From Cyanophora paradoxa CCMP329 (lineage: Eukaryota; Plantae; Glaucophyta): a DNA stretch of 64,000 nucleotides. The stretch lies in the NCBI GenBank assembly GCA_004431415.1, contig QPMI01000408.1, positions 1 through 64,000 on the forward strand, written 5' to 3'. This document shows, one piece after another, positions 41,851 to 51,894 of this stretch. The first letter of the stretch is position 1; the number at the start of each line of letters is the position of its first letter. Both the position numbers and the translations under genes were made by a program. Under the pieces are notes generated by a model. That model was not told where the DNA came from, ran no database searches, and worked only from the letters and a program-made list of their open reading frames with translations.

Positions 41851-43130
41851 ATTTCATTGAACTTGCTCATGATCAGGGAAGACGGCTCATTTAAAACAGA
41901 TTTCTCAATCTGCACACACACATGCGAAGAAAGATTTAAAAAGCGGCAGATCGCGATTGTGATCGTGACAAGATCTAGACCTTCAAACTATTGCGCACCC
42001 GAATCTCATCGCCTGATGCCCCTTGTGCCACGAGAGCTGCGACGAGGGCCGCTTCGGCCGCATTCAACACTTGCATCTGGACCGCTGTGCAGTTGGAAAA
42101 CGAAAATGCCAAAATGCATATATGCAACATCAATTGCAATCGAAACAGACGACGTCGAAACCGACGGCTGCATGCGCGCATAAGCATGTCCGACGGTCGA
42201 TGATTAGCGAATGAGCAAAAGCGCACATTTAAATCTCCAGCTGAAAAAGGAGAATTGCGAAGAGCCTGGCCGCAGACCTAGATGGCCGCGCACCGCTCAA
42301 GCAGCGCGGCGTTGACGCTTGCAGCATCGATCTCAGAGACATTCTGCGGCTGCGACCCCCGCCCGGCCCTCGACGGCGTCATTTGTCGATCGATATCGAT
42401 ATATATGGGCGCATGGGCGCACGCGCATCTGATCCTGTTCATGATCGGGGTCTTCGTGTCGCCGCGCCCGCTTCTCGGCGCGCTCACAGGGCGTGCTCGC
42501 GCCCGACGCCGACATTCCTCGCGATCGAGTTCTATCGTGCTTTGATCGATCAGCTGAATGCGCAGCGGCGTACTACGGTACGCGTTCGCTTCGAATTCTG
42601 GCGCCCAAACTCGCGATCGAGGTAGCCGGAAACTCGCGCGAGGCGATCGCGAGCTCGAGGTCGGCCCTTATAATTGCTCGATCGCGACCTGTAGGCCCGA
42701 GCGCCTCCCCTCAATTCCGCCGGGCCCGGGGCCCCTTGACCCCCTCTAGATCTCCCTTCGAATTTCGCCCCCTTCAAATTCACCTCCGAGGCTCTCCCCT
42801 CTCCTCTGCCTCTCCCCTCGCGTGCAAATACCTGAAATTCGAATTCTGAACGGAACTCTCGTGTGCAACTGCTGCATTGGCTTGACGGTGGCTTGCAATT
42901 GGGTGATCGTATTATGGATCTATGGAGCAACGCTAATAGTGTAACCTGCCGCATGCACTAGCTATAGTACATATGCATGCATAAATTCTGAACGAAACGT
43001 ACGGTACCGGTGGCTTGCAATTGGCGATGATCTTATATATCACGGATCTATGATAGTACTACGGCATGGAGCAACGCTAATAACATAACCTGCGCATGCT
43101 TTGCAAAGTAGTTGAATTTGGAAGAGCCCC

Positions 43131-46100
43131 TTAGCTGTAGAGGGGCGCGTCGAGCGGGGGTCCTGGAACGATCGCTGCAAAGCATACGAAGAAGACGCGT
43201 CAACGCGAATCTATAGTCAAAGCGCGGCACAACGGCCCGCAAAAGAGTGCACCGGCGCGGAGGATGGTGAGGACGATGATAATGAAAATAATCATGTACA
43301 GGAACCGGCACACCATGACCACCTGCGAGCGGGCGCGGGCAAATCATTAAGCGGAGGCAGCGGACTAATAAAAGGAACGAATAGAACGGGCGGACGCGGT
43401 CGAGCTTTTCGGTGACTCTGTCGGGGTCGTAGTCCTGGACGGTGAGGAGGCCGAAGAAGAACTTCTGCGGCTCGTAGCCCGTCAGGCCCTCGTCCTGCGC
43501 CCGCTCCGCCGCCGTCTTCTGGCCGTGCCCCCGGCCCCGCAGCTTCTTCACCTGCGGCGCCGGCGCGGGCACGGGCTTCGGTCGGAATTGAGCGGCGCGG
43601 CGGCCGCGGGCACGGGCGGACCCAGCTCGGCTGGCGCGGCTCGCGGGCCGGCTTGGCGTAGAGGTCGGCGGCGGGCGGGAACGGCGACGCGGGGCCCTCG
43701 TGGATGTACGCGGGCGGAGCCGCCTGGTTGGAGGACTCGGACCCCTGGAACGAGGAGCCCTTGCGGGGGAAGAGGCCCGTGGCGCCGGCGCCGTCGCTGC
43801 CGCGGGCGACGGGCGGCGACGGGAGGAAGATCGACTGCACGCGCAGCGGCGGCTCGCGCTCGTCGACGACGTCGAGGCCGGGCGTTCTGTCCGAGTACAC
43901 GACGGCGACGCCGGCGTCGGCGCGGGGCGAGCCCGACGAGCCCGTGCGCGCCGTCGCGAGCAGCGGGTCGAGGAGGGCGACGCGGGCCGCCTCTGGCTCC
44001 CTGCGGGCGGCCGCGGCCCGCTCGGCCTTCTCGGCGGCGGCGGCCTTGGCCTGCGCCTTGGCGTGGTCCTTGCGCAGGTCCCGCACGACCTCCGCCGCCT
44101 GCCAGAACATCTGCAGCGTCACCTGTATCACCAGGATCGAGAACTGCGAAACGACGACAAGCGCCGCGTCAGGGCTTCCCCGCCAAAGGCAGCTGCGACG
44201 TTGACAGCGCTCTCGCCTGGAAGGCGTAGACGAAGGCGATGAAGGCGGTGAGGCGGGTGAGGTACGCCACGGGGGGCAGGGCCTCGAGGATCACGAAGGA
44301 GTAGATTAGCGTCCCGATGATGGAGGTCGAGACCAGCTCCATCTGCGGGGGCGCCGATCGTGAGCGCCAACGCATTTGGATGATTTCGATGTCTCAGACG
44401 CCGTGGCCGCGACGGGGGCGCGAGCATGGGCGCAAATGGGCGATTGTAATGTCTTGAATGCCACGGACCTTGTAGTCGTTGTCGAAGGCGAGGAAGAAGG
44501 AGAAGTAGGAGGAGATCATGAGCATGGCGAGCGGGAAGATGATGTTCGTCGAGTGGTACGTCGACCGCCGCTCCGCGTGGAAGTACACCTGTACGGAGGG
44601 ATTGGATTAGGTTGGCTTTCATCGTCGGATTGCAAATTGGGCCGACAAAGCCCTAATCAGTGCATGAGCGAATGAGAGGCGCACGGTGAGGCGGGAGTAG
44701 TCCTGCGAGATGCCGCTGGACACGTTGCTCACGACCTGGTCCAGGTTCTTGAAGATGAACATCCCGTCCTGCGCGCGCGTCGGCACAGGAAGGAAGGATA
44801 ACGAAGTCGGAGAGGCAAGGCGGCATGCGCGCGCACGTCGATGGAAGTGAGGACGCCCTGGACGGACTCGACGGTCGATGCGTTCCGCGCGTCGTTCCAG
44901 TTCGCGAAGACCATCTTCTCCGTGTTGTACACGCTGCACGGTCGCCGCCTCAGCGGCGCGCGAGCGGCGCAGACAAAATCTCGCCGAGGCGATAGAAGGG
45001 ACGCACGAGGACTCGAGGCGGACCATCATGAGCTGCGTGTCGAACGGGAATTCCCGCACGTTGATTGCTGCGCTCGAGCGCGGCGGACGATAAGAAGCCG
45101 GCCGGCCGGGGGCGCGCAGGCGCGGCCCGCGCACCGTCCCAGTTGACTCGGATCAGGTAGCGCTCGCTGCGGAATTGGGAGTTCGGAGGGGTCACCGGGG
45201 AGGAACCCATCAATTGCGCGGTAGATCGGAGCCACGGGGCGCGCACATCAATTGGACCATGCCGCGGTCGACGCGGAGGCGCTGCGAGAGGTACTGCGCG
45301 CACAGGCAGTTCAGCACAAACGAAAACGGCAGAGAATGGCCGGGGCGGACGCGGGGCGTGTCGCGGGCGTTTGCGAAGACGAGTGCGGGAGTCCAAATCT
45401 GGCTCGTGAAGCTGCACGGCTGTTAGAAAAAGGCGGGGCGCCGGCGCCCGGCGAGAATCCGAAATCGCTATGCGGGGCCAGCGCACTTCCAGTTGAAGAA
45501 CGTGTCGCGGTAGGGAGTAAAAGACGGGTCGAACCACTGCGTCACCTGGCTCGCGTCCAGCGTGAAGATCTGGTCCGCCTCTTTCGTCTCATACACGTTG
45601 TTGATCTAACGATGTCACGCAAATATGATTCGAAACACCGTAAACGATGGATCAAACCACATCGCCCCGCACCTGGAGGACGACGGAGACGGGGACGGGG
45701 AAAGTGTCCATGATGGTGCGCGGGGTCCCCGTCGCCTGCTGTAGGAGCTGCCGCGCCCTCACCAGCGTCTGATTCGCTCCCGCGGTTGCCGACGATGGGA
45801 GCGTTCTGAATAAGAAAGGTAACGTGAGCGCCACGTCAACGCGGGCAAAGCCGGGGTGGCGCACGTGGCGCCGGACTGGACGGCGAGCAGAATGGCGGCG
45901 TATCTGACGCGGGGGTCAGAGTGGGCCTCCAGCGCCGGATAGCCGGGGGCCCTGTACCCGAGGGGCGGGAAGGGGATGCGGTTCGACTTGACGACGATGG
46001 CGGCCGAAGGCAGCGAGATCGCCTCCAGCTGCGCGCGCCGCCGCGCCGTCAGCGCCAACGGGCGAGGGCGGCGAGGGCGGCGCAAGCGCACGGAGATGGA

Positions 46101-49100
46101 GAGGTCGGCGTAGAGGCCTGTGAGGGCGTCGGCGATGACGACGCCGCGCAGGTCGAAGGCCGTCGGGCCCGCCACCGTCAGCGGCGCCCCGTTCGTCTCC
46201 TCGCCGTCCCGGATCTTGTACCGGAAGTTGAGCATCTTTCCATTGCAATTTCGAGTCAGCGCGGGAGGAGGGGCAGCGCGGCGCGGATCCTGTCGCACCC
46301 GCGGGTCGCGGGCGTCAAAGGAGACGAACTCGGCGAGGCCGCCCGAGGAGAGATCGATGCGGGGCGGGGTCGCCGGCGTCCGCGGCTCCATTGTGATGTC
46401 TCGCGTAAAGATCAACTGCAGCATCGGGTTAGACGGATTAAAAAGGAAAAAAGAATAAGGGCATTATTTCTATGAAGCAAATTCCGAGCGCGCCTGGATG
46501 CGGATGGCGGGGGAGGAGGCGTCGAGGGTGCGCCCGAGGTAGGTGGCCGTCACGTCGAGGACCATGGGCGGGGACGTGAAGACGAAGAAGGGGAGCGCCC
46601 GCGACGTCGGGGGCGCCTTGAGCGGCCCCGCGCGCGCCCCGAAGACGCCGTCGCGGCTCGCGAGGGCGCTCCCCGCCGGCAGCTCGACACGCGCCTCCGC
46701 GTTGAGCGCCGGCGGCACCGCCTCCAGCGGCACGAAGGCGCGCGGCGAGGCGGGGTCCAGCCCGCACGCCGCCCCCTCCGGCACCTCTGCGCCCCGCCCC
46801 GCTCAGCCCGCCGTTATGGGCGTGAAGAGCGTAAGGCGCACCGAAGGCGAAGAGGATGCCGGGCTCGCGGTACTGCGGGCCCGCGTCGTAGCCGCTCCCC
46901 TCGATCAGCGCGAACGGGCCAAGTGTCCCCGCCTGCACGTCGTGAGTGCCTGAGCTGAGGTAACATTAAAATGCAAAGCGAGGCCACCAGAACGTTAAGG
47001 CGGAGAGACGTCCCTGGGAAAGGGGCGCCCAGCAGCCCTCTCTGCGAGGGCGTCGGGATGCAAGAAGGCGGCAGGCCGGGTTGGGGCGCTGCACGTCGAA
47101 GGTGGCGCGGGCGGTGGCATTGACGGTGGCGCGCCCGCAGCGCATCGGAATGTAAGGCGCCTGGCCCCGGTCTCCCAACTGCGCGCGAGGACAGTCGTGA
47201 GCACAGATATGCATTTTAAAGCGAATCCTAAATTAAAGCCAAAGTGCAGAGCGCACCTTCACGGCGACGGGCTGGTCGTAGAACACGGCGATGTACACCA
47301 CATCCTTGACCGTCGCCGCCTGCCGCACGGCGTCAGCGGCGTGGCAGCGACGGCGGATCCGGAGCCGCGACGACGGGGCGGGCGGGCCTGGACGTTGGAG
47401 GAGTTGAAGGTGAGGCCGGCGGCGGAGAAGAAGTTGGTCGTCGCGAGGAAGAAGGTCCAGTTGCGCACGAAGGGCTCCCCCGAGTAGATCGTGTACTCCC
47501 CGTTGCTGCCGGGCCGTTATATTAGCCTGGCGCCGCCGTCGGTTCGGGGCGCGGAAGGGCGCACAAGAGCTCGTCGACAGCGATGGGAGTACGCTCGAAG
47601 GCGATCGCGCCGTCGAGGACGGCGACGAGGGACCAGCCGCGGGTCGTGGCGTTGGTCTGCGGCTGCAGCGTCCCCGCCCCGACCGTCTGGTTCGAGAGAG
47701 GTCCGAGAGGGACCGCCGGGTCCCGCGTGAACCCGCACTTGGCGTCCTTCTGCACTCTGTACGCGAAGTTGACCAACGAGACCCGGATGAGCCCCTGCGC
47801 GGCTGCCGTGAGCTGAGAGCGGCCGGGCTCGTCGGGCGGCGGGGGGGCACCCCGGCAAAGCCCTCGAGCGTGTCGAACACGTCGACGAAGGAGAAGACGG
47901 CGGGGACGGCGCCCGGGCGGCCGGCGCCGCAGGTGAGGTTCAGGTAGGGCGTCCCGGGGGCCGGCGCCGTCCCGTTGACGCCCGATGAGCCCCGCACGAC
48001 GACCGGCTCCGAGTAGACGAGCGTTAGATACACGAGCTGGTTTGTGAAGGCGACCTGGGCGACAGGCGTCGGGCGGGGAAGCGGCGCGGGGATCGCGGGG
48101 GCGCTGGGCACCGTCTGGGGCGTGTAGGAGCTGCCGGCGGCGAGCTGCGCGTTGGCGGCGTCGCGCGGGTGCGCGCCGAGGGTGAAGAAGACGCGCATGA
48201 CATAAGGATCGTCTGCCTGGACCTGCGCGGCGCTCGGAGGGAACGAGAGCGGCTCGGTTCGCGTGAGCGCACCACGATGTTGGTGGGTTGCGGCGGCTCG
48301 GGCAGAGCAGTCACGATGGCGGTGCCGTCGACCTTCGCTACGAGGCCAGTCGCGTTCTGCAGGGCGAAGACGCGGAGCGTGCCGTCCGTGCCGATGCCGC
48401 ACGAGTCGTCGCGGACGACGGACGCGGCGAACCGGGCGTAGTAGACGCGCTCGGAGGTGGACGTCGCCGTGTTCAGCTCGTCTTGGGTGACGATCTCGGC
48501 GAAGGTCGCGCGGCGCTTCGGCGCGTCGGACCCGGGTTCGCTGCACGTGTACTGGAAGGAGGGCGGCGGCGAGCCCGGGAGGAGCTGCATGGGCTCGCGG
48601 AAGCGCAGCTCGAAGGTGAGCGGTTGCCCCGGCAGCGCAACCGGCACGGCCGAGGCGCGGCCGCCGCCGCCGCCGCCGCCGCCGGCCTCGTCGGCGTACG
48701 GGTTCAGCGGCACGGACCACGCGGCCGCGGCGATCGCATTGAAGGCGCCTTTGCGGACGCGGATGGCGGAGAAACCGGGCGGCGGGGCGTAGACGGCGAA
48801 CGCGAACTGGGCGAGGACGTTCCCGCCGACAGCGGCGTCGACGGGGCTGTCGTCGAGGACGGCCGCGACGCGATCCGCGTTGGCGACGACGCTGTCCCCG
48901 AAGTAGATCTTCGACTTGGTGCAGTCGTCCCCCCGCGTCACGTTGTACCTGCCGGCCCCCGGCGGTCGGACGGGATGGCCGGATCGGACCCGAATGCTGG
49001 AGGACCCGCTGGGGCGGCTGCGCACCTGAACAGGAGGCCCTGGTTGGGGAGCCCGATGTCCTCCAAGAGGCACTCGTCGACCGCGCCGGGGCCCTTCACC

Positions 49101-51894
49101 CCGCCGCACTCCACTGCCGGCGGGACACGCGGGCGGGCGCGACGGTCAGGCGCGAAAGAAAGATAAGATGGGACGGGAGGATTTTGTTGCAAGGATGGCG
49201 CACGGAACTCGGTGTCGAAGGAATACGGGGGCCCGTCGGGGGAGTCCAGGCAGGGGAGCGAGGGGTTGGTGCCGCAGGGGTACAGGACCTCGTAGAAGCG
49301 CGCGACGCGCGGCACGCCGCACTTGAACGTGAGCGAGGGGACGGCGTCGCCGGGCCGCACCTGATCAGGCGCCGGGGCGCGAATGTCGACGTCAGCGGCG
49401 GCGAGAAAGAGAGACGGGAAGAGAGGGCGCGCGGGCGCGCTTCGACGGGCTCGCTGAAGGCGACGAAGAACTGGAGGAGGCCGCCGATGCCGAGGGCGCC
49501 GAGGGCGTTGTCGGCCGTGGCCGCGCTCGGCTTCACCGGCGACTCGGGGTCGAGGCGCGCGCGCATCCCCGCGACTGCGCGCGCGCGTTCGTGAGCGAGC
49601 GAGCGGCTATTTGAAGGAAGCTGTGAAGAAGCGCACTGGTCGGGAGGGAGCGGATGACGGTGCTGTACTCCATCGGCCGCCACGCGTCGCCGATGGCGAC
49701 GGCGTTCCGCGAGAAGGGCGCGTCGTCCGAATTGGCGACGACGGCCCCGACCAGCGGCCCGCCCGACGCGAAGCCGGCACTGTCGCACGCGTCGCCGCGC
49801 GACACGTTGTAGTGGAAGAGCAGCCCGGACGTCTGCAGCGCCGGCGCTGCGGCGTCCGCCGCCGCCGCGACGGGCGGGACCGCGGTCGGGTTGGCCCAGG
49901 TCAGCTCCGGCCCGGCGGGCGAGCCGACGCAGGGCCTGGTGGGGACCGCCGTGCAGGGCACGACCCTGTCCACGAAGGCGAGCGGCCGCGCCGCCGCGCC
50001 GCACGCGTACTTGAGCGTCACGGCCGACGTGTTGCGCACGGGCTCCGTGAACGCCGCGAAGACCAGGAACCGAGCGCCGAAGCGCGAGACGGGCTTGGCG
50101 CCTGCAGCCGCAGCGGGCGTGAGCGGGGCGCGCTTCGTCGTTGGGGCGCGCCGGGCCGGGACGGCAGGCGCACTGCTCGCGCCGGTGTCTCCCAGCACGT
50201 ACGCAGGTGCGGGGCTAGCGCCCGGGTCAATCGTGGACCGGACCGAGAGGAGCACGGGGCGGCCCGCCACCACCTGCGGCGCCCGCACGCGTCGGGACCT
50301 GGCAGCGCCGGGGCGGGCGGTGGCAGCGGCGGCACTGACCAGCCTGGCGGGTAGTTTCGACGGGGTCTTCGCGGCCGTGGTCAGCGAGGCACCGTCCACG
50401 CTGGGGCTGCTCCGGGATTCTGCCGAGCAGAGTCGGACGGGGCGGGGCGGGGCGGGCCGCCGGGCACGGCGCGGCGCACGGGGGTCCGCGATCCCGGTGA
50501 GCTGACTGGCGGCGGAGGAGCCGAACAAGCAGGCGGCGCCGCGGTTCACCGAGTAGACGAAGCTGACAACCGGCGAGGAGTAGACCTCCCTCGCCCGCGC
50601 CACCAGGTAATCCGTCTGTGGGCGGCGCCGGTGGCGTCGGCTGCAGCCGCGGCGGTGCGGCGGCGGCGGAGGGCGACGAACCACCGAGCCGCGCTTGCAC
50701 GTCATGTTCAGAGCTGCGCAGCGGGCGACAGGAGGAGTCAGACGGCGCCCGGCCGGATTGGGGCTTAGGCCTAGTCTGGTCTAGATCTGGTTCGTCTGGA
50801 TAACAACAACGGCGCGCTGAGCTTTGAGTGAAAAGTGCAGGGACCTGGGGCTAAAGGGAGCGGGGGGGGCGGAGGGCGGAGGGGCGGAGTGGGGGGAGGG
50901 GGGGGGGGGGGGTGGCTGATGGGGGCCAAACAAGTACGGGGGTGCGGAGGTGGAGGTACCGGTGGTAGAGGGGTAGATGGGGATCGAGGTGGGGATAGAG
51001 GCGGGGGGGGAGGGGGGGGGGCGGGGCGGGGAAGGGGACGGGGGGCGTGGGGGCGATAGGGGGGTTAGGGGTAAGGGGTTGGACGATCAGGTCGGGCGAT
51101 GGGGAAACAGGTAAGAATGGGGACGCGCAGGCGGAGTGGGGGTGGGGTTGAGGGTTGGGGGTTGGGGTTGGGGTTGGGGGGGGGGGGGGGGGGGGTGGGG
51201 GGGGAGGGGGGGGCTGGGATTGGGAGGGAGCGGGGGCGATGAGAGAAAGAGGGTGAGAATTGCGGTCGGTTCGGTATGTATGCAGGGCGGAGAGCGGGGC
51301 AGGCCGGGAAGAGCGGGGCGAGACGCTACGGGAACGGGCCGGAAGGGGCGAGGTTGGCGGGGCGCGGGGCAGATAGGGAAGGGACGGCGTGGGGCGAGAA
51401 GGGGCGGCGCAGGGCGGGGCGAGAAAGAACGGGGCGGGGCGGGGCGGGGCGGGGCGGGGCGGGGCGCACTGGGGCAGTCGCCGGCGCAGTCGATGATGGT
51501 GACCGGCTCATCGAATACGACCCTGCGAGGCGCGCGTGCCGCGTCTGCGCGGCCCCCGCAGGCGCGGGCGGGCGCGGCCTCGGCAGGCGCACTCGATGGT
51601 GAACGAGTCGGGGGCGCGTGCCGCCGTGCCCAGGTAGACGTCACCGTCAGGGGCCGGTGCGGGCGGCACGAACGAGCTGCTTTCAACCTGCGCGCCGGCG
51701 TGGCCGCGAGGCGCCGCCCGGCCGAGTGAGTGCCGGTACCGCGGCCGCACGGCGCGGGTGCGGCGCCAGGCGCGGCGGGAGCGGCTCACGGTGATGGCGA
51801 CGGCGCTGGTCGACAGGCAAACGACGATGCAGAAGAGCAAGGGCGTCTCAGGGCGCGCCCGTCCGCAGACCCGCGACGTGCACCCGCGCGGCAT
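43131..51894 (-). CDS. Cys-less pentameric ligand-gated ion channel subunit with very large N-terminal Ig-like repeat region
   Basis: ECD motifs TQWFDP, IWTPALVFAN and REFPFDTQ. M1 RRSTYHSTNIIFPLAMLMISSYFSFFL, M2 MELVSTSIIGTLIYSF, LPPVAYLT, M3, long M3-M4 loop, M4 ...MVCRFLYMIIFIIIVLTIL. Signal peptide LLFCIVVCLSTSAVA. About 7 repeats with F(S/T/D/R)EPV...L.CG...F.Y.V..G. Confidence 0.85.

Follow-up and report, generated by a model that had tools for sequence, protein, structure and literature searches.

Does the interval 43131-51894 of the DNA studied here hold one gene, in which a long array of extracellular repeats is joined to a pentameric ion channel (pLGIC), or two neighbouring genes, and what would such an array do on a channel? 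The window, i.e. the whole stretch of DNA that was analysed, is 64,000 nucleotides long and comes from the glaucophyte Cyanophora paradoxa CCMP329.

Gene structure and transcription

The boundaries of the interval are exactly the start and stop codons of the public Cyanophora paradoxa gene model tig00020553_g10501.t1 (EukProt EP00741_Cyanophora_paradoxa_P010862, here P0001; 1785 aa), and each block of P0001 residues maps with full identity onto the window. The gene is divided into about 40 exons, mostly by introns of 50-126 nt. The encoded protein starts with a probable signal peptide, after which come about 1,220 residues of extracellular repeats (R1-R7), a linker of about 70 residues, the ECD of a Cys-less Pro-loop pLGIC, M1-M3, a 211-residue loop and M4. 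The features are, from the 5' end of the gene:

43131..51894, minus strand: whole CDS; ATG at 51894, stop at 43131-43133; public protein P0001 (1785 aa)
51787..51894, minus strand: exon 1, probable signal peptide MPRGCTSRVCGRARPETPLLFCIVVCLSTSAVA/ITV (hydrophobic window and basic N-region)
50199..51660, minus strand: R1, aa 45-174 (motifs; profile matches to R2 and R4, E 0.002-0.02)
49534..50198, minus strand: R2, aa 175-351; FTEPV, YACG, FHYNVSRGDAC (reciprocal R2/R3 profile matches, E 1e-13 to 1e-18)
48678..49533, minus strand: R3, aa 352-554; FSEPV, FKCG, FRYNVTRGDDC (motifs and profile matches)
48148..48677, minus strand: R4, aa 555-714; FREPM, YTCS, YYARFAASVVRDDSC (profile matches, AlphaFold2 model, RNA contig cover)
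47424..48147, minus strand: R5, aa 715-898; YSEPV, LTCG, FAYRVQKDAKC (motifs, profiles; RNA introns 47505/47565 and 47793/47850)
46563..47423, minus strand: R6, probable repeat, aa 899-1082; FYDQPV, MRCG, FAFEVPEGAAC (hhalign; RNA joints 47317/47386 and 46786/46842)
46092..46562, minus strand: R7, aa 1083-1192; FTRDI, FRYKIRDGEE, no cysteines (motif-level likeness only)
45712..46028, minus strand: linker, aa 1193-1260, three exons (RNA joints 46028/46092 and 45903/45958)
45806..45864, minus strand: 59-nt GT-AG intron, in-frame join of repeat part and channel part; same in the public model
44559..45711, minus strand: pLGIC ligand-binding domain, aa 1261-1450, nine small exons (Pfam Neur_chan_LBD; ELIC alignment)
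45039..45050, minus strand: Pro-loop FPFD (translation); Ala and Met replace the two Cys-loop cysteines
44099..44558, minus strand: pre-M1 Arg, M1, M2, M2-M3 loop (LPPVAY), M3 (hydrophobic windows, PDB matches)
44144..44216, minus strand: GC-AG intron within M3, donor GCGAGA; needed by the exon sum and used in the public model
43393..44098, minus strand: M3-M4 cytoplasmic loop, 211 aa (RNA contigs cover 43394-43549 and 43620-44143)
43131..43319, minus strand: M4 (LYMIIFIIIVLTIL), short C-terminal tail and stop; includes intron 43175-43252 (RNA joints 43320/43394 and 43174/43253)

Spliced RNA contigs from three runs of two studies (X1, X2 and X7) bridge from the repeats into the channel in a single open frame; these contigs are short-read assemblies, not full-length single molecules. 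The GT..AG skips of this gene are present in the three RNA runs and absent from the DNA run X8. Record 1 of X1 (2,334 nt) stretches from the 3' UTR over every channel exon as far as exon 46092-46235, so that this R7 exon and the channel exons share RNA contigs, and record 5 of X2 (2,426 nt) starts at 48041 in R5 and continues through R6 and R7 into the channel. A sequence-only reading of this DNA had proposed a single gene joining the two parts in frame; the bridging contigs support it, with one gene and one reading frame instead of two.

The same reading had placed a 59-nt intron at 45806-45864. Its splice sites can be read directly (GT..AG ends, QSGAT/TLPSS), as can those of the 67-nt intron at 45606-45672 (GT..AG ends, PVPVSVVLQ/INNVYE); neither is among the 15 of 36 RNA joints listed. 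Record 1 of X1 has exactly 990 nt between 44143 and 46092. The 12 exons add up to this length only when introns 45806-45864, 45606-45672, 45068-45134 and 44144-44216 are all removed, so the 59-nt intron is required. Exon arithmetic and public model thus agree on it, and the 990-nt exon chain contains no in-frame stop.

Splicing is borne out by the RNA contigs over the region from 43174 to about 48950; within R3 they run from 48433 to about 48950, with splicing further upstream. For the part of the gene above about 49.1-49.25 kb, its 5' third, the structure given here comes from the public model and from collinearity with a paralog, P0002. Here a long CCCCG-rich intron of about 756-810 nt lies inside R1, where the public model is probably mis-spliced. 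This is a single, spliced, transcribed nuclear gene, and the encoded subunit has about 1,785-1,800 residues.

The channel part

By sequence, the C-terminal part qualifies as a complete pLGIC of the Cys-less, Pro-loop kind. The Pfam family Neur_chan_LBD matches at 3.7e-13 (49.8 bits against a cutoff of 26) and TIGR00860 at 1e-26, and the ECD aligns to ELIC residues 7-200 and beyond. In the PDB, 269 solved pLGIC sequences match over the ECD and M1-M3, the best at 1.4e-18, and when the M1 exon and the M2-M3 exon are each searched alone they match only pLGICs. A feature search of the ESM Atlas scores 0.95 to pLGIC clusters, with haptophyte and diatom clusters among the neighbours. Neur_chan_memb reaches 26.0 bits, 2 bits under the Pfam cutoff of 28.1, and a word search found no close channel relatives.

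All four transmembrane helices are present, and every hallmark position of the family is kept, namely the pre-M1 Arg, M1 Pro and M2-M3 Pro together with the beta-2 Trp and the FPFD Pro-loop. P0001 lacks cysteines between residues 1016 and 1752, in agreement with the earlier description of a full pLGIC that has the Pro-loop and lacks the Cys-loop cysteines. The intracellular mouth of M2 reads Y-K-M-E, which is neither the classical cation nor the classical anion motif.

Hydrophobicity windows give five segments only, the signal peptide and M1-M4, and the N-terminal region of about 1,220 residues is without a membrane segment. The more than 1,000 extracellular repeat residues expected ahead of the channel are found in P0001. 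The N-terminus probably is a signal peptide, as residues 18-36 form a hydrophobic window (KD 2.32) preceded by a basic N-region. The linker contains a hydrophobic stretch, GYAAILLAVQSGAT, and a helix-like one, NQTLVRARQLLQQ; the former resembles a signal peptide and may be a relic of one.

The repeats and their relatives

The N-terminal region probably consists of six homologous modules of 130-200 residues, each with a conserved Cys pair, and a degenerate seventh module. R1-R5 are clearly homologous in sequence: the profile matches that link them (E 1e-18 to 6e-3) outscore 2,100 shuffled decoys, and those of R3-R4 and R4-R5 have E 4e-4 to 2e-5. R6 is probably homologous to them (hhalign 69%, E 4.6e-5 against the R1-R5 profile, motifs in register), while R7 is tied to R1-R6 by motif register alone and its score is not significant. 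All seven start motifs quoted earlier (VVFDEPV, AAFTEPV, VAFSEPV, LRFREPM, LVYSEPV, VFYDQPV and LIFTRDI) are present in frame, as are the x-C-G and F.Y.V..GD.C motifs downstream of the repeat starts. The earlier count of about seven repeats thus holds clearly for five modules and probably for a sixth; for the seventh it stands at the level of motifs only.

One repeat, R4, was modelled with AlphaFold2 and is an all-beta sandwich of eight strands (core pLDDT 72-91), in line with what had been expected of the repeats; a model of R6-R7 has a pLDDT of 28. The structural matches of R4 are generic (Z 3.3-5.8, the best 5.8) and include weak ones to filamin, SbsC, and pilus and ice-binding adhesin domains. 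When 14 repeat copies were compared with Pfam no model matched, even at E 10, and no PDB family was found for the repeats. The label "adhesin-like Ig" amounts to a generic resemblance in fold and is otherwise speculative.

Bacterial Ig-like repeats of fibrillar adhesins and S-layers (Big_5, Big_12, SWM_repeat) are likewise tandem, all-beta modules of about 100-150 residues, and the hhhF-x-EPV start motif is reminiscent of Big_5-type domains. The ESM Atlas feature score of the repeats to Big_12/Big_5 and SWM_repeat clusters is 0.89, below the level that counts beyond a lead. What sets the Cyanophora family apart from the bacterial repeats is its conserved Cys pair and its F.Y.V.RGD.C motif.

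A comparison with 1.84 billion representative proteins yielded a single relative of the repeats, the collinear Cyanophora paralog, and a search with the R3/R4 exon matched only P0001 and P0002. The Cys pairs are conserved in P0002, and the identity between the two proteins climbs from 40% in R1 to 70% in R7, the best-conserved part. The P0002 model stops right after R7, by apparent intron read-through. If the repeats of P0002 are not fused to a channel, the array can occur as a separate protein.

Comparison with known pLGICs

A close parallel in layout is found in DeCLIC from Desulfofustis and other prokaryotic pLGICs with N-terminal domains, in which a Cys-less Pro-loop channel likewise stands behind beta-rich extracellular domains in the same polypeptide. 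In DeCLIC these domains, NTD1 and NTD2, are mobile and modulate gating (PMC9897478, PMC12664993). However, DeCLIC has two jelly-roll lobes of about 200 residues in total, against seven modules and about 1,220 residues here, and the Cyanophora protein, from a eukaryote, is encoded in about 40 exons and carries a 211-aa cytoplasmic loop. The structural matches of R4 did not include DeCLIC.

Over the ECD and M1-M3 the best PDB sequence matches are ELIC-type chains (1e-16 to 1e-18), with GABA-A alpha at about 1e-15; for the M1 exon it is sTeLIC. The subunits of ELIC, GLIC, sTeLIC, GABA-A and glycine receptors have about 300-450 residues and no N-terminal repeat array, and the animal GABA-A and glycine receptors bear the Cys-loop disulfide that the Cyanophora channel lacks.

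Cys-less pLGICs of unicellular eukaryotes share with the Cyanophora channel the conserved Pro-loop and the residues of the ECD-TMD interface (PMC4795631). That survey, by Jaiteh, Taly and Henin in 2016, covers stramenopiles, chlorophytes, opisthokonts and alveolates; neither Cyanophora nor glaucophytes occur in it. Its authors trimmed non-aligning segments at both termini and report no giant ectodomains (PMC4795631).

What the repeats may do

It is highly likely that the locus as a whole is best explained as one fused gene for a pLGIC subunit, whose repeats most likely serve as an accessory sensing or anchoring domain. That there are instead two genes, a secreted repeat protein ending at about 45.9 kb and an independently started channel, merged by prediction or short-read assembly, is extremely unlikely. 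A contig across two genes is no proof of a single transcript, the P0002 model terminates directly after R7, and a signal-peptide-like AAILLAVQSGA lies in the linker just before the N-terminal helix of the channel. However, that hydrophobic stretch is merely about 9 residues long, the frame is open over five spliced junctions from R7 to beta-1 (introns of 54-67 nt) with no stop codon, Met or room for a promoter and UTR in between, and the identical exon chain is seen in three runs. It is also very improbable that the channel part is decaying or no longer conducts, in a protein that acts solely as surface receptor or scaffold. The unusual cytoplasmic mouth of M2, the slightly low Neur_chan_memb score and the lack of close relatives in the word search would fit such decay, but every hallmark position and all four transmembrane helices are retained, the frame is intact through about 20 small exons, and the gene is transcribed and correctly spliced.

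Two other proposals accept the fusion and differ on the role of the repeats. In one, from the sequence-only reading, the arms of the five subunits join in a single long stalk, and gating comes from contact, adhesion or mechanical pull on that stalk, not from a small ligand. Long tandem beta-sandwich modules with disulfide pairs do recall force-bearing surface proteins, as do the weak matches to filamin, pilus and ice-binding adhesin domains, and attachment at the ECD apex follows known pLGIC topology. We nevertheless regard it as quite improbable: those matches are generic, the residues that couple ECD and TMD are conserved, as in channels gated ordinarily by a ligand or ion, and no pLGIC is known to be force-gated. 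In the other proposal the ectodomain leaves gating unaffected and is a passive spacer or an anchor that localises the channel, for instance by tethering it to a surface coat or matrix; this would agree with the fast divergence of the distal repeats (40% identity to the paralog) and with the fact that no ligand-binding family is detectable in them. This too is unlikely, as R7, which adjoins the ECD, is the most conserved repeat (70%), a better fit to a functional contact with the channel than to a spacer, and the N-terminal domain of DeCLIC does affect gating (PMC9897478).

For the preferred fused subunit, assembly into pentamers, ion conduction and whatever the arms do are all inferred from membership in the family. 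Five subunits would form the pore, as in any pLGIC. As the N-terminus of a subunit lies at the membrane-distal top of the ECD, five multi-module arms would project from the apex of the channel, on the extracellular (or luminal) side. There they may bind extracellular material and tune gating allosterically, with the conserved proximal R7 as coupling element and the fast-diverging distal modules as specificity end.

According to the DeCLIC papers, N-terminal domains of such a type are not observed in eukaryotic homologs (PMC9897478, PMC12664993). The Cyanophora gene is thus a eukaryotic case of a layout that the channel literature holds to be absent from eukaryotes.

Gene model and database relatives

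The gene is encoded on the minus strand, in DNA rich in G+C (62-74%). Repeat and channel motifs are spread across all three frames in a three-frame translation of that strand, as expected of a gene with many small introns. When one repeat exon (window:48273-48944:-) was searched against 1.84 billion representative proteins, only two matches were found.

Matches of the repeat exon (handle, database identifier, length, source)
P0001, tig00020553_g10501.t1, 1785 aa, EukProt Cyanophora paradoxa
P0002, tig00000204_g17744.t1, 1258 aa, EukProt Cyanophora paradoxa

P0001, the public model of the gene, is identical to the window block by block from 51894 to 43134. The sequence-only reading had placed a repeat-channel gene at 43131-51894; this observation is confirmed, and its coordinates thus agree exactly with the start and stop of a gene model that automatic annotation had already produced. 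We found no paper describing tig00020553_g10501.

Exons were searched individually, and no spliced sequence other than the database protein P0001 was used. For introns not listed in the alignments, brute-force enumeration of GT/GC-AG pairs was far too permissive and was replaced by mapping of P0001. Pfam gave no match on raw open frames or on single exons, the latter because exons of 15-44 aa are too short. Shared-word homolog searches returned nothing for the stop-free frame with the exon of repeat R5 as region, only P0001 itself for P0001 with the channel region (candidates of 982-3124 aa), and nothing for the channel part alone. These searches are insensitive, probably swamped by low-complexity loops, and their nulls do not establish absence. 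The same caution applies to the R6-R7 alignment, with which a likewise insensitive scan of metagenomes found no relative; by these means, no giant relatives were found elsewhere. The gene and its collinear paralog point to a lineage-specific family.

Over the span from signal peptide to R7, the module adjoining the channel, the paralog P0002 and P0001 are collinear at 50% identity. The identity climbs steadily, from 40% in the distal R1 to 70% in R7, which suggests that R7 is the most constrained module. Residues 1228-1258 of the P0002 model end with RRTPLRPVLRRAQSWRLRTALELMRASWI, right after the R7 intron position of the P0001 gene. This appears to be intron read-through, so the model is probably truncated, and a channel part, if P0002 has one, may have been missed or split into a separate model.

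Splicing joins repeats and channel

To follow the transcript, contigs of four public runs (X1, X2, X7 and X8) were aligned to 43100-49099. In X1, X2 and X7, which come from two studies, the contigs contain skips with CT..AC ends, that is GT..AG on the minus strand, while X8 contigs have no such splice skips in this span. This identifies X1, X2 and X7 as RNA and X8 as DNA. The RNA contigs are short-read assemblies and not single molecules.

Record 1 of X1 (2,334 nt) extends from the 3' UTR across 43394-43549 and 43620-44143 as far as 46092-46235. Record 5 of X2 (2,426 nt) starts from 48041, passes through 47565-47793, 47386-47505, 46494-46786 and 46092-46235, and continues for 1,041 nt more into the channel. 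The following joints are among the 15 of 36 that were listed, at the depth of the same contigs:

45903/45958, minus strand, RNA joint on the repeat side
46028/46092, minus strand, RNA joint on the repeat side
45411/45487, minus strand, RNA joint on the channel side
45293/45351, minus strand, RNA joint on the channel side
45166/45247, minus strand, RNA joint on the channel side
44933/45007, minus strand, RNA joint on the channel side

The 59-nt GT-AG intron 45806-45864, which the sequence-only reading had proposed to join the repeats in frame to the channel, lies outside these 15 joints and was tested through the record coordinates. Between 44143 and 46092, record 1 of X1 contains exactly 990 nt. 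The exons of this interval measure 71, 39, 133, 119, 61, 47, 32, 61, 97, 84, 120 and 126 nt, and their sum is also 990. The match implies that four introns have been spliced out: 45806-45864, 45606-45672, 45068-45134 and the GC-AG intron 44144-44216. The reading frame is open across every junction of this chain, and together the sum and the open frame support the proposed intron and its in-frame join. Above about 49.1-49.25 kb, in the 5' third and outside the contig-aligned span, the structure of the gene is based on the public model and the collinear paralog.

Repeats and channel thus form one gene in one frame, and the fusion reading is supported. Three other explanations, two separate genes, an assembly chimera and a pseudogene, were weighed and rejected.

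A few further features of the locus were observed:

44144-44216, minus strand, GC-AG intron inside M3, donor GCGAGA; it is demanded by the length arithmetic of the RNA contig and present in the public model, and the remaining checked introns of the gene are all GT-AG, with a donor that is mostly GTGCGC
44604-44678, intron between the beta-10 and M1 exons, where one X8 DNA contig has 39 different bases for 75 intronic bases, probably an allelic or strain indel
46353-46368, 46564-46620, 46689-46740 and 47906-47910, clusters of G/C transversions near the ends of single X1, X7 or X8 contigs, which may be alleles or misplaced pieces of the paralog on tig00000204
48647-48697, GGC repeat encoding the eight-glycine run between R3 and R4, masked as a repeat in the read alignment; some RNA contigs end here
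50682-51521, minus strand, region where VVFDEP is followed in the public model by the 810-nt intron 51503-50694 and a micro-exon of 4 residues (RGSV)

The last of these concerns R1. An alternative intron, 51469-50714 (GTGCGC..GCGCAG, phase 1), would give ...DCAGDCP-T-LNMTCKRGSV, a product that matches DCPTLTFTCGESEQ of P0002 and would regain the R1 cysteines. To judge from the comparison with P0002, R1 is probably mis-spliced in the public model. In either version the intron is about ten times the length of the gene's other introns, and it is rich in CCCCG repeats, readable as a proline-rich open frame.

The channel part

In P0001, Pfam Neur_chan_LBD (PF02931) matches residues 1262-1448 at 3.7e-13 and 49.8 bits (cutoff 26), aligning positions 22-215 of the 216-position profile, and TIGR00860 matches at 1e-26. 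Neur_chan_memb scores 26.0 bits, 2 bits short of its cutoff of 28.1. P0001 is matched by 269 solved pLGIC sequences, the best at 1.4e-18, and in the PDB alignments ELIC-type and GABA-A chains are covered from beta-1 to M3 inclusive. By ESM Atlas features, pLGIC clusters score 0.95. Single pieces were also searched against PDB. The M1 exon alone matches 21 sequences, pLGICs only, with sTeLIC best at 0.008, and the M2-M3 frame alone matches 57, all GABA-A or GLIC, both at the right positions; the beta-1/beta-2 exon alone has no match. Matches of the open frame around FPFD to ribosomal L29 were dismissed as chance; that frame contained intron sequence.

The Pro-loop motif FPFD (residues 1366-1369), HAERR ahead of M1 and LPPVAY in M2-M3 align to equivalent positions in ELIC, GLIC and GABA-A chimeras. 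The interface hallmarks are kept: the beta-2 Trp, FPFD, the pre-M1 Arg, the M1 Pro and the M2-M3 Pro. By hydropathy, the only membrane segments of P0001 are the signal peptide and four helices:

residues 1456-1474 of P0001, hydrophobic window of M1
residues 1481-1506 of P0001, hydrophobic window of M2
residues 1514-1535 of P0001, hydrophobic window of M3
residues 1756-1774 of P0001, hydrophobic window of M4

The M3-M4 loop has 211 aa and in this resembles eukaryotic pLGICs. The cytoplasmic mouth of M2 reads Y-K-M-E, which differs from both the classical cation motif and the anion motif.

In metazoan-type Cys-loop receptors two cysteines 13 residues apart flank the loop. Here the Pro-loop sequence is AINVREFPFDTQLM, with Ala and Met at the cysteine positions. 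Cysteine is absent between residues 1016 and 1752, and the sole one after 1015 is in M4. The protein thus lacks the flanking pair that defines a strict Cys-loop receptor, while it has the ligand-binding domain, the Pro-loop/interface set and the four transmembrane helices of a pLGIC. The earlier description, a full pLGIC with FPFD and without Cys-loop cysteines, is borne out by the PF02931 and PDB matches, M1-M4 and the residue scan.

The repeat ectodomain

From the signal peptide to beta-1 there are about 1,224 residues with paired cysteines, 11 N-x-S/T sites and no hydrophobic segment. Homology between the repeats was assessed with one profile per repeat pair (P0001 and P0002), and each profile was run over the remaining repeats together with 2,100 shuffled decoys. 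Links were obtained for R2-R3 (1e-13 to 1e-18), R3-R4 (4e-4 to 6e-5), R4-R5 (2e-5) and R1-R2 (2e-3 to 6e-3). R6 aligns to a profile of R1-R5 with all three motifs in register (hhalign 69%, E 4.6e-5). R7 is in register without reaching significance, and it is without the cysteines. Of the about seven repeats first proposed, six are therefore homologous modules by profiles, R6 probably so, and the seventh is degenerate and shares only the motif register.

Structure prediction was informative for one module. AlphaFold2 of R4, with an alignment of 14 repeat copies, gave an eight-strand all-beta core (pLDDT 72-91), but for R6-R7, with a two-sequence alignment, it was uninformative (pLDDT 27.8). Foldseek of the R4 model against PDB found nothing below E 0.025. 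In VIA-align the best match (Z 5.8) is the C-terminal sandwich of a sialic acid esterase, and a lower tail at Z 3.3-4.7, below the level of true relatives, holds Ig-like, filamin, FN3, CBM, S-layer and pilus-adhesin domains. An ESM Atlas structure search with R4 gave two unnamed clusters (TM 0.51-0.53).

At the sequence level, the 14 repeat copies have no match to Ig-like Pfam models at E up to 10, and none of the Pfam, NCBIfam or PDB sequence families matches the repeats. Some clusters, unnamed ones as well as those of Big_12, Big_5 and SWM_repeat, are linked to them weakly by ESM Atlas features (0.89-0.91). For the bacterial Ig-like families Big_5 and Big_12 the repeats have no HMM match, and the ESM Atlas value of 0.89 is a lead only. 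As modelled, R4 is a generic beta-sandwich without family assignment. The sequence-only reading had called the repeats adhesin-like Ig domains: judged by the R4 model Ig-like beta-sandwich may be a fair description, but adhesin-like is only a resemblance, with no family match.

Linker and possible origin of the fusion

Between repeats and channel the linker contains AAILLAVQSGA, followed by the helix-like NQTLVRARQLLQQ. The small exon ahead of the 59-nt intron was noted as follows:

45865-45903, minus strand, exon encoding GYAAILLAVQSGAT, which resembles a signal peptide in its hydrophobic core and cleavage region

This exon directly precedes the pLGIC N-terminal helix. To judge from its sequence, the linker looks like a former signal peptide with the usual pLGIC N-terminal helix, and GYAAILLAVQSGAT may be a relic of the signal peptide that the channel gene had before the fusion. 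This look of the linker hints that the fusion arose when an upstream gene read into the channel gene.

Possible function and significance

Given the structure of pLGICs, the subunits would assemble into a pentamer with five arms, the repeat ectodomains, departing from the apex of the extracellular domain (ECD). Most likely the arms would serve as an accessory domain for binding, anchoring or modulation. The proximal module might provide coupling and the distal ones specificity, which fits the conservation gradient. Gating by contact or force on the arms, an idea of the sequence-only reading, is a speculative and rather unlikely alternative. It seems rather unlikely, if worth stating, that the Cyanophora channel family acts as sensors of macromolecules or contact, in which diversified distal Ig-like modules would bind extracellular polymers, particles or other cells and pass the signal through the conserved R7 and the Pro-loop ECD to open the pore.

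The N-terminal domain of DeCLIC, mobile and accelerating gating, is the only characterised one in the superfamily (PMC9897478, PMC12664993). Its jelly-roll NTD1 and NTD2 are absent among the best 50 Foldseek and VIA matches of R4, the one repeat modelled, where weak matches are possible. Cys-less pLGICs are known in protists, and the survey reporting them mentions neither Cyanophora nor glaucophytes (PMC4795631). Prokaryotic pLGICs are known to carry N-terminal domains, which have been stated to be absent from eukaryotic homologs (PMC9897478).

To this stated absence the expressed algal gene is an extreme counter-example, whose accessory part is 3-4 times as large as its channel core. It may well be an example of fusion at a former signal peptide. 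If the sensor reading were true, the gene would provide the first eukaryotic pLGIC with a regulatory N-terminal domain and a direct coupling of surface receptor to ion channel, unknown in the pLGIC superfamily. The gene offers a natural experiment on the extent to which an added ectodomain can govern pLGIC gating, and a lead on the role of ligand-gated channels in a free-living unicell without synapses.
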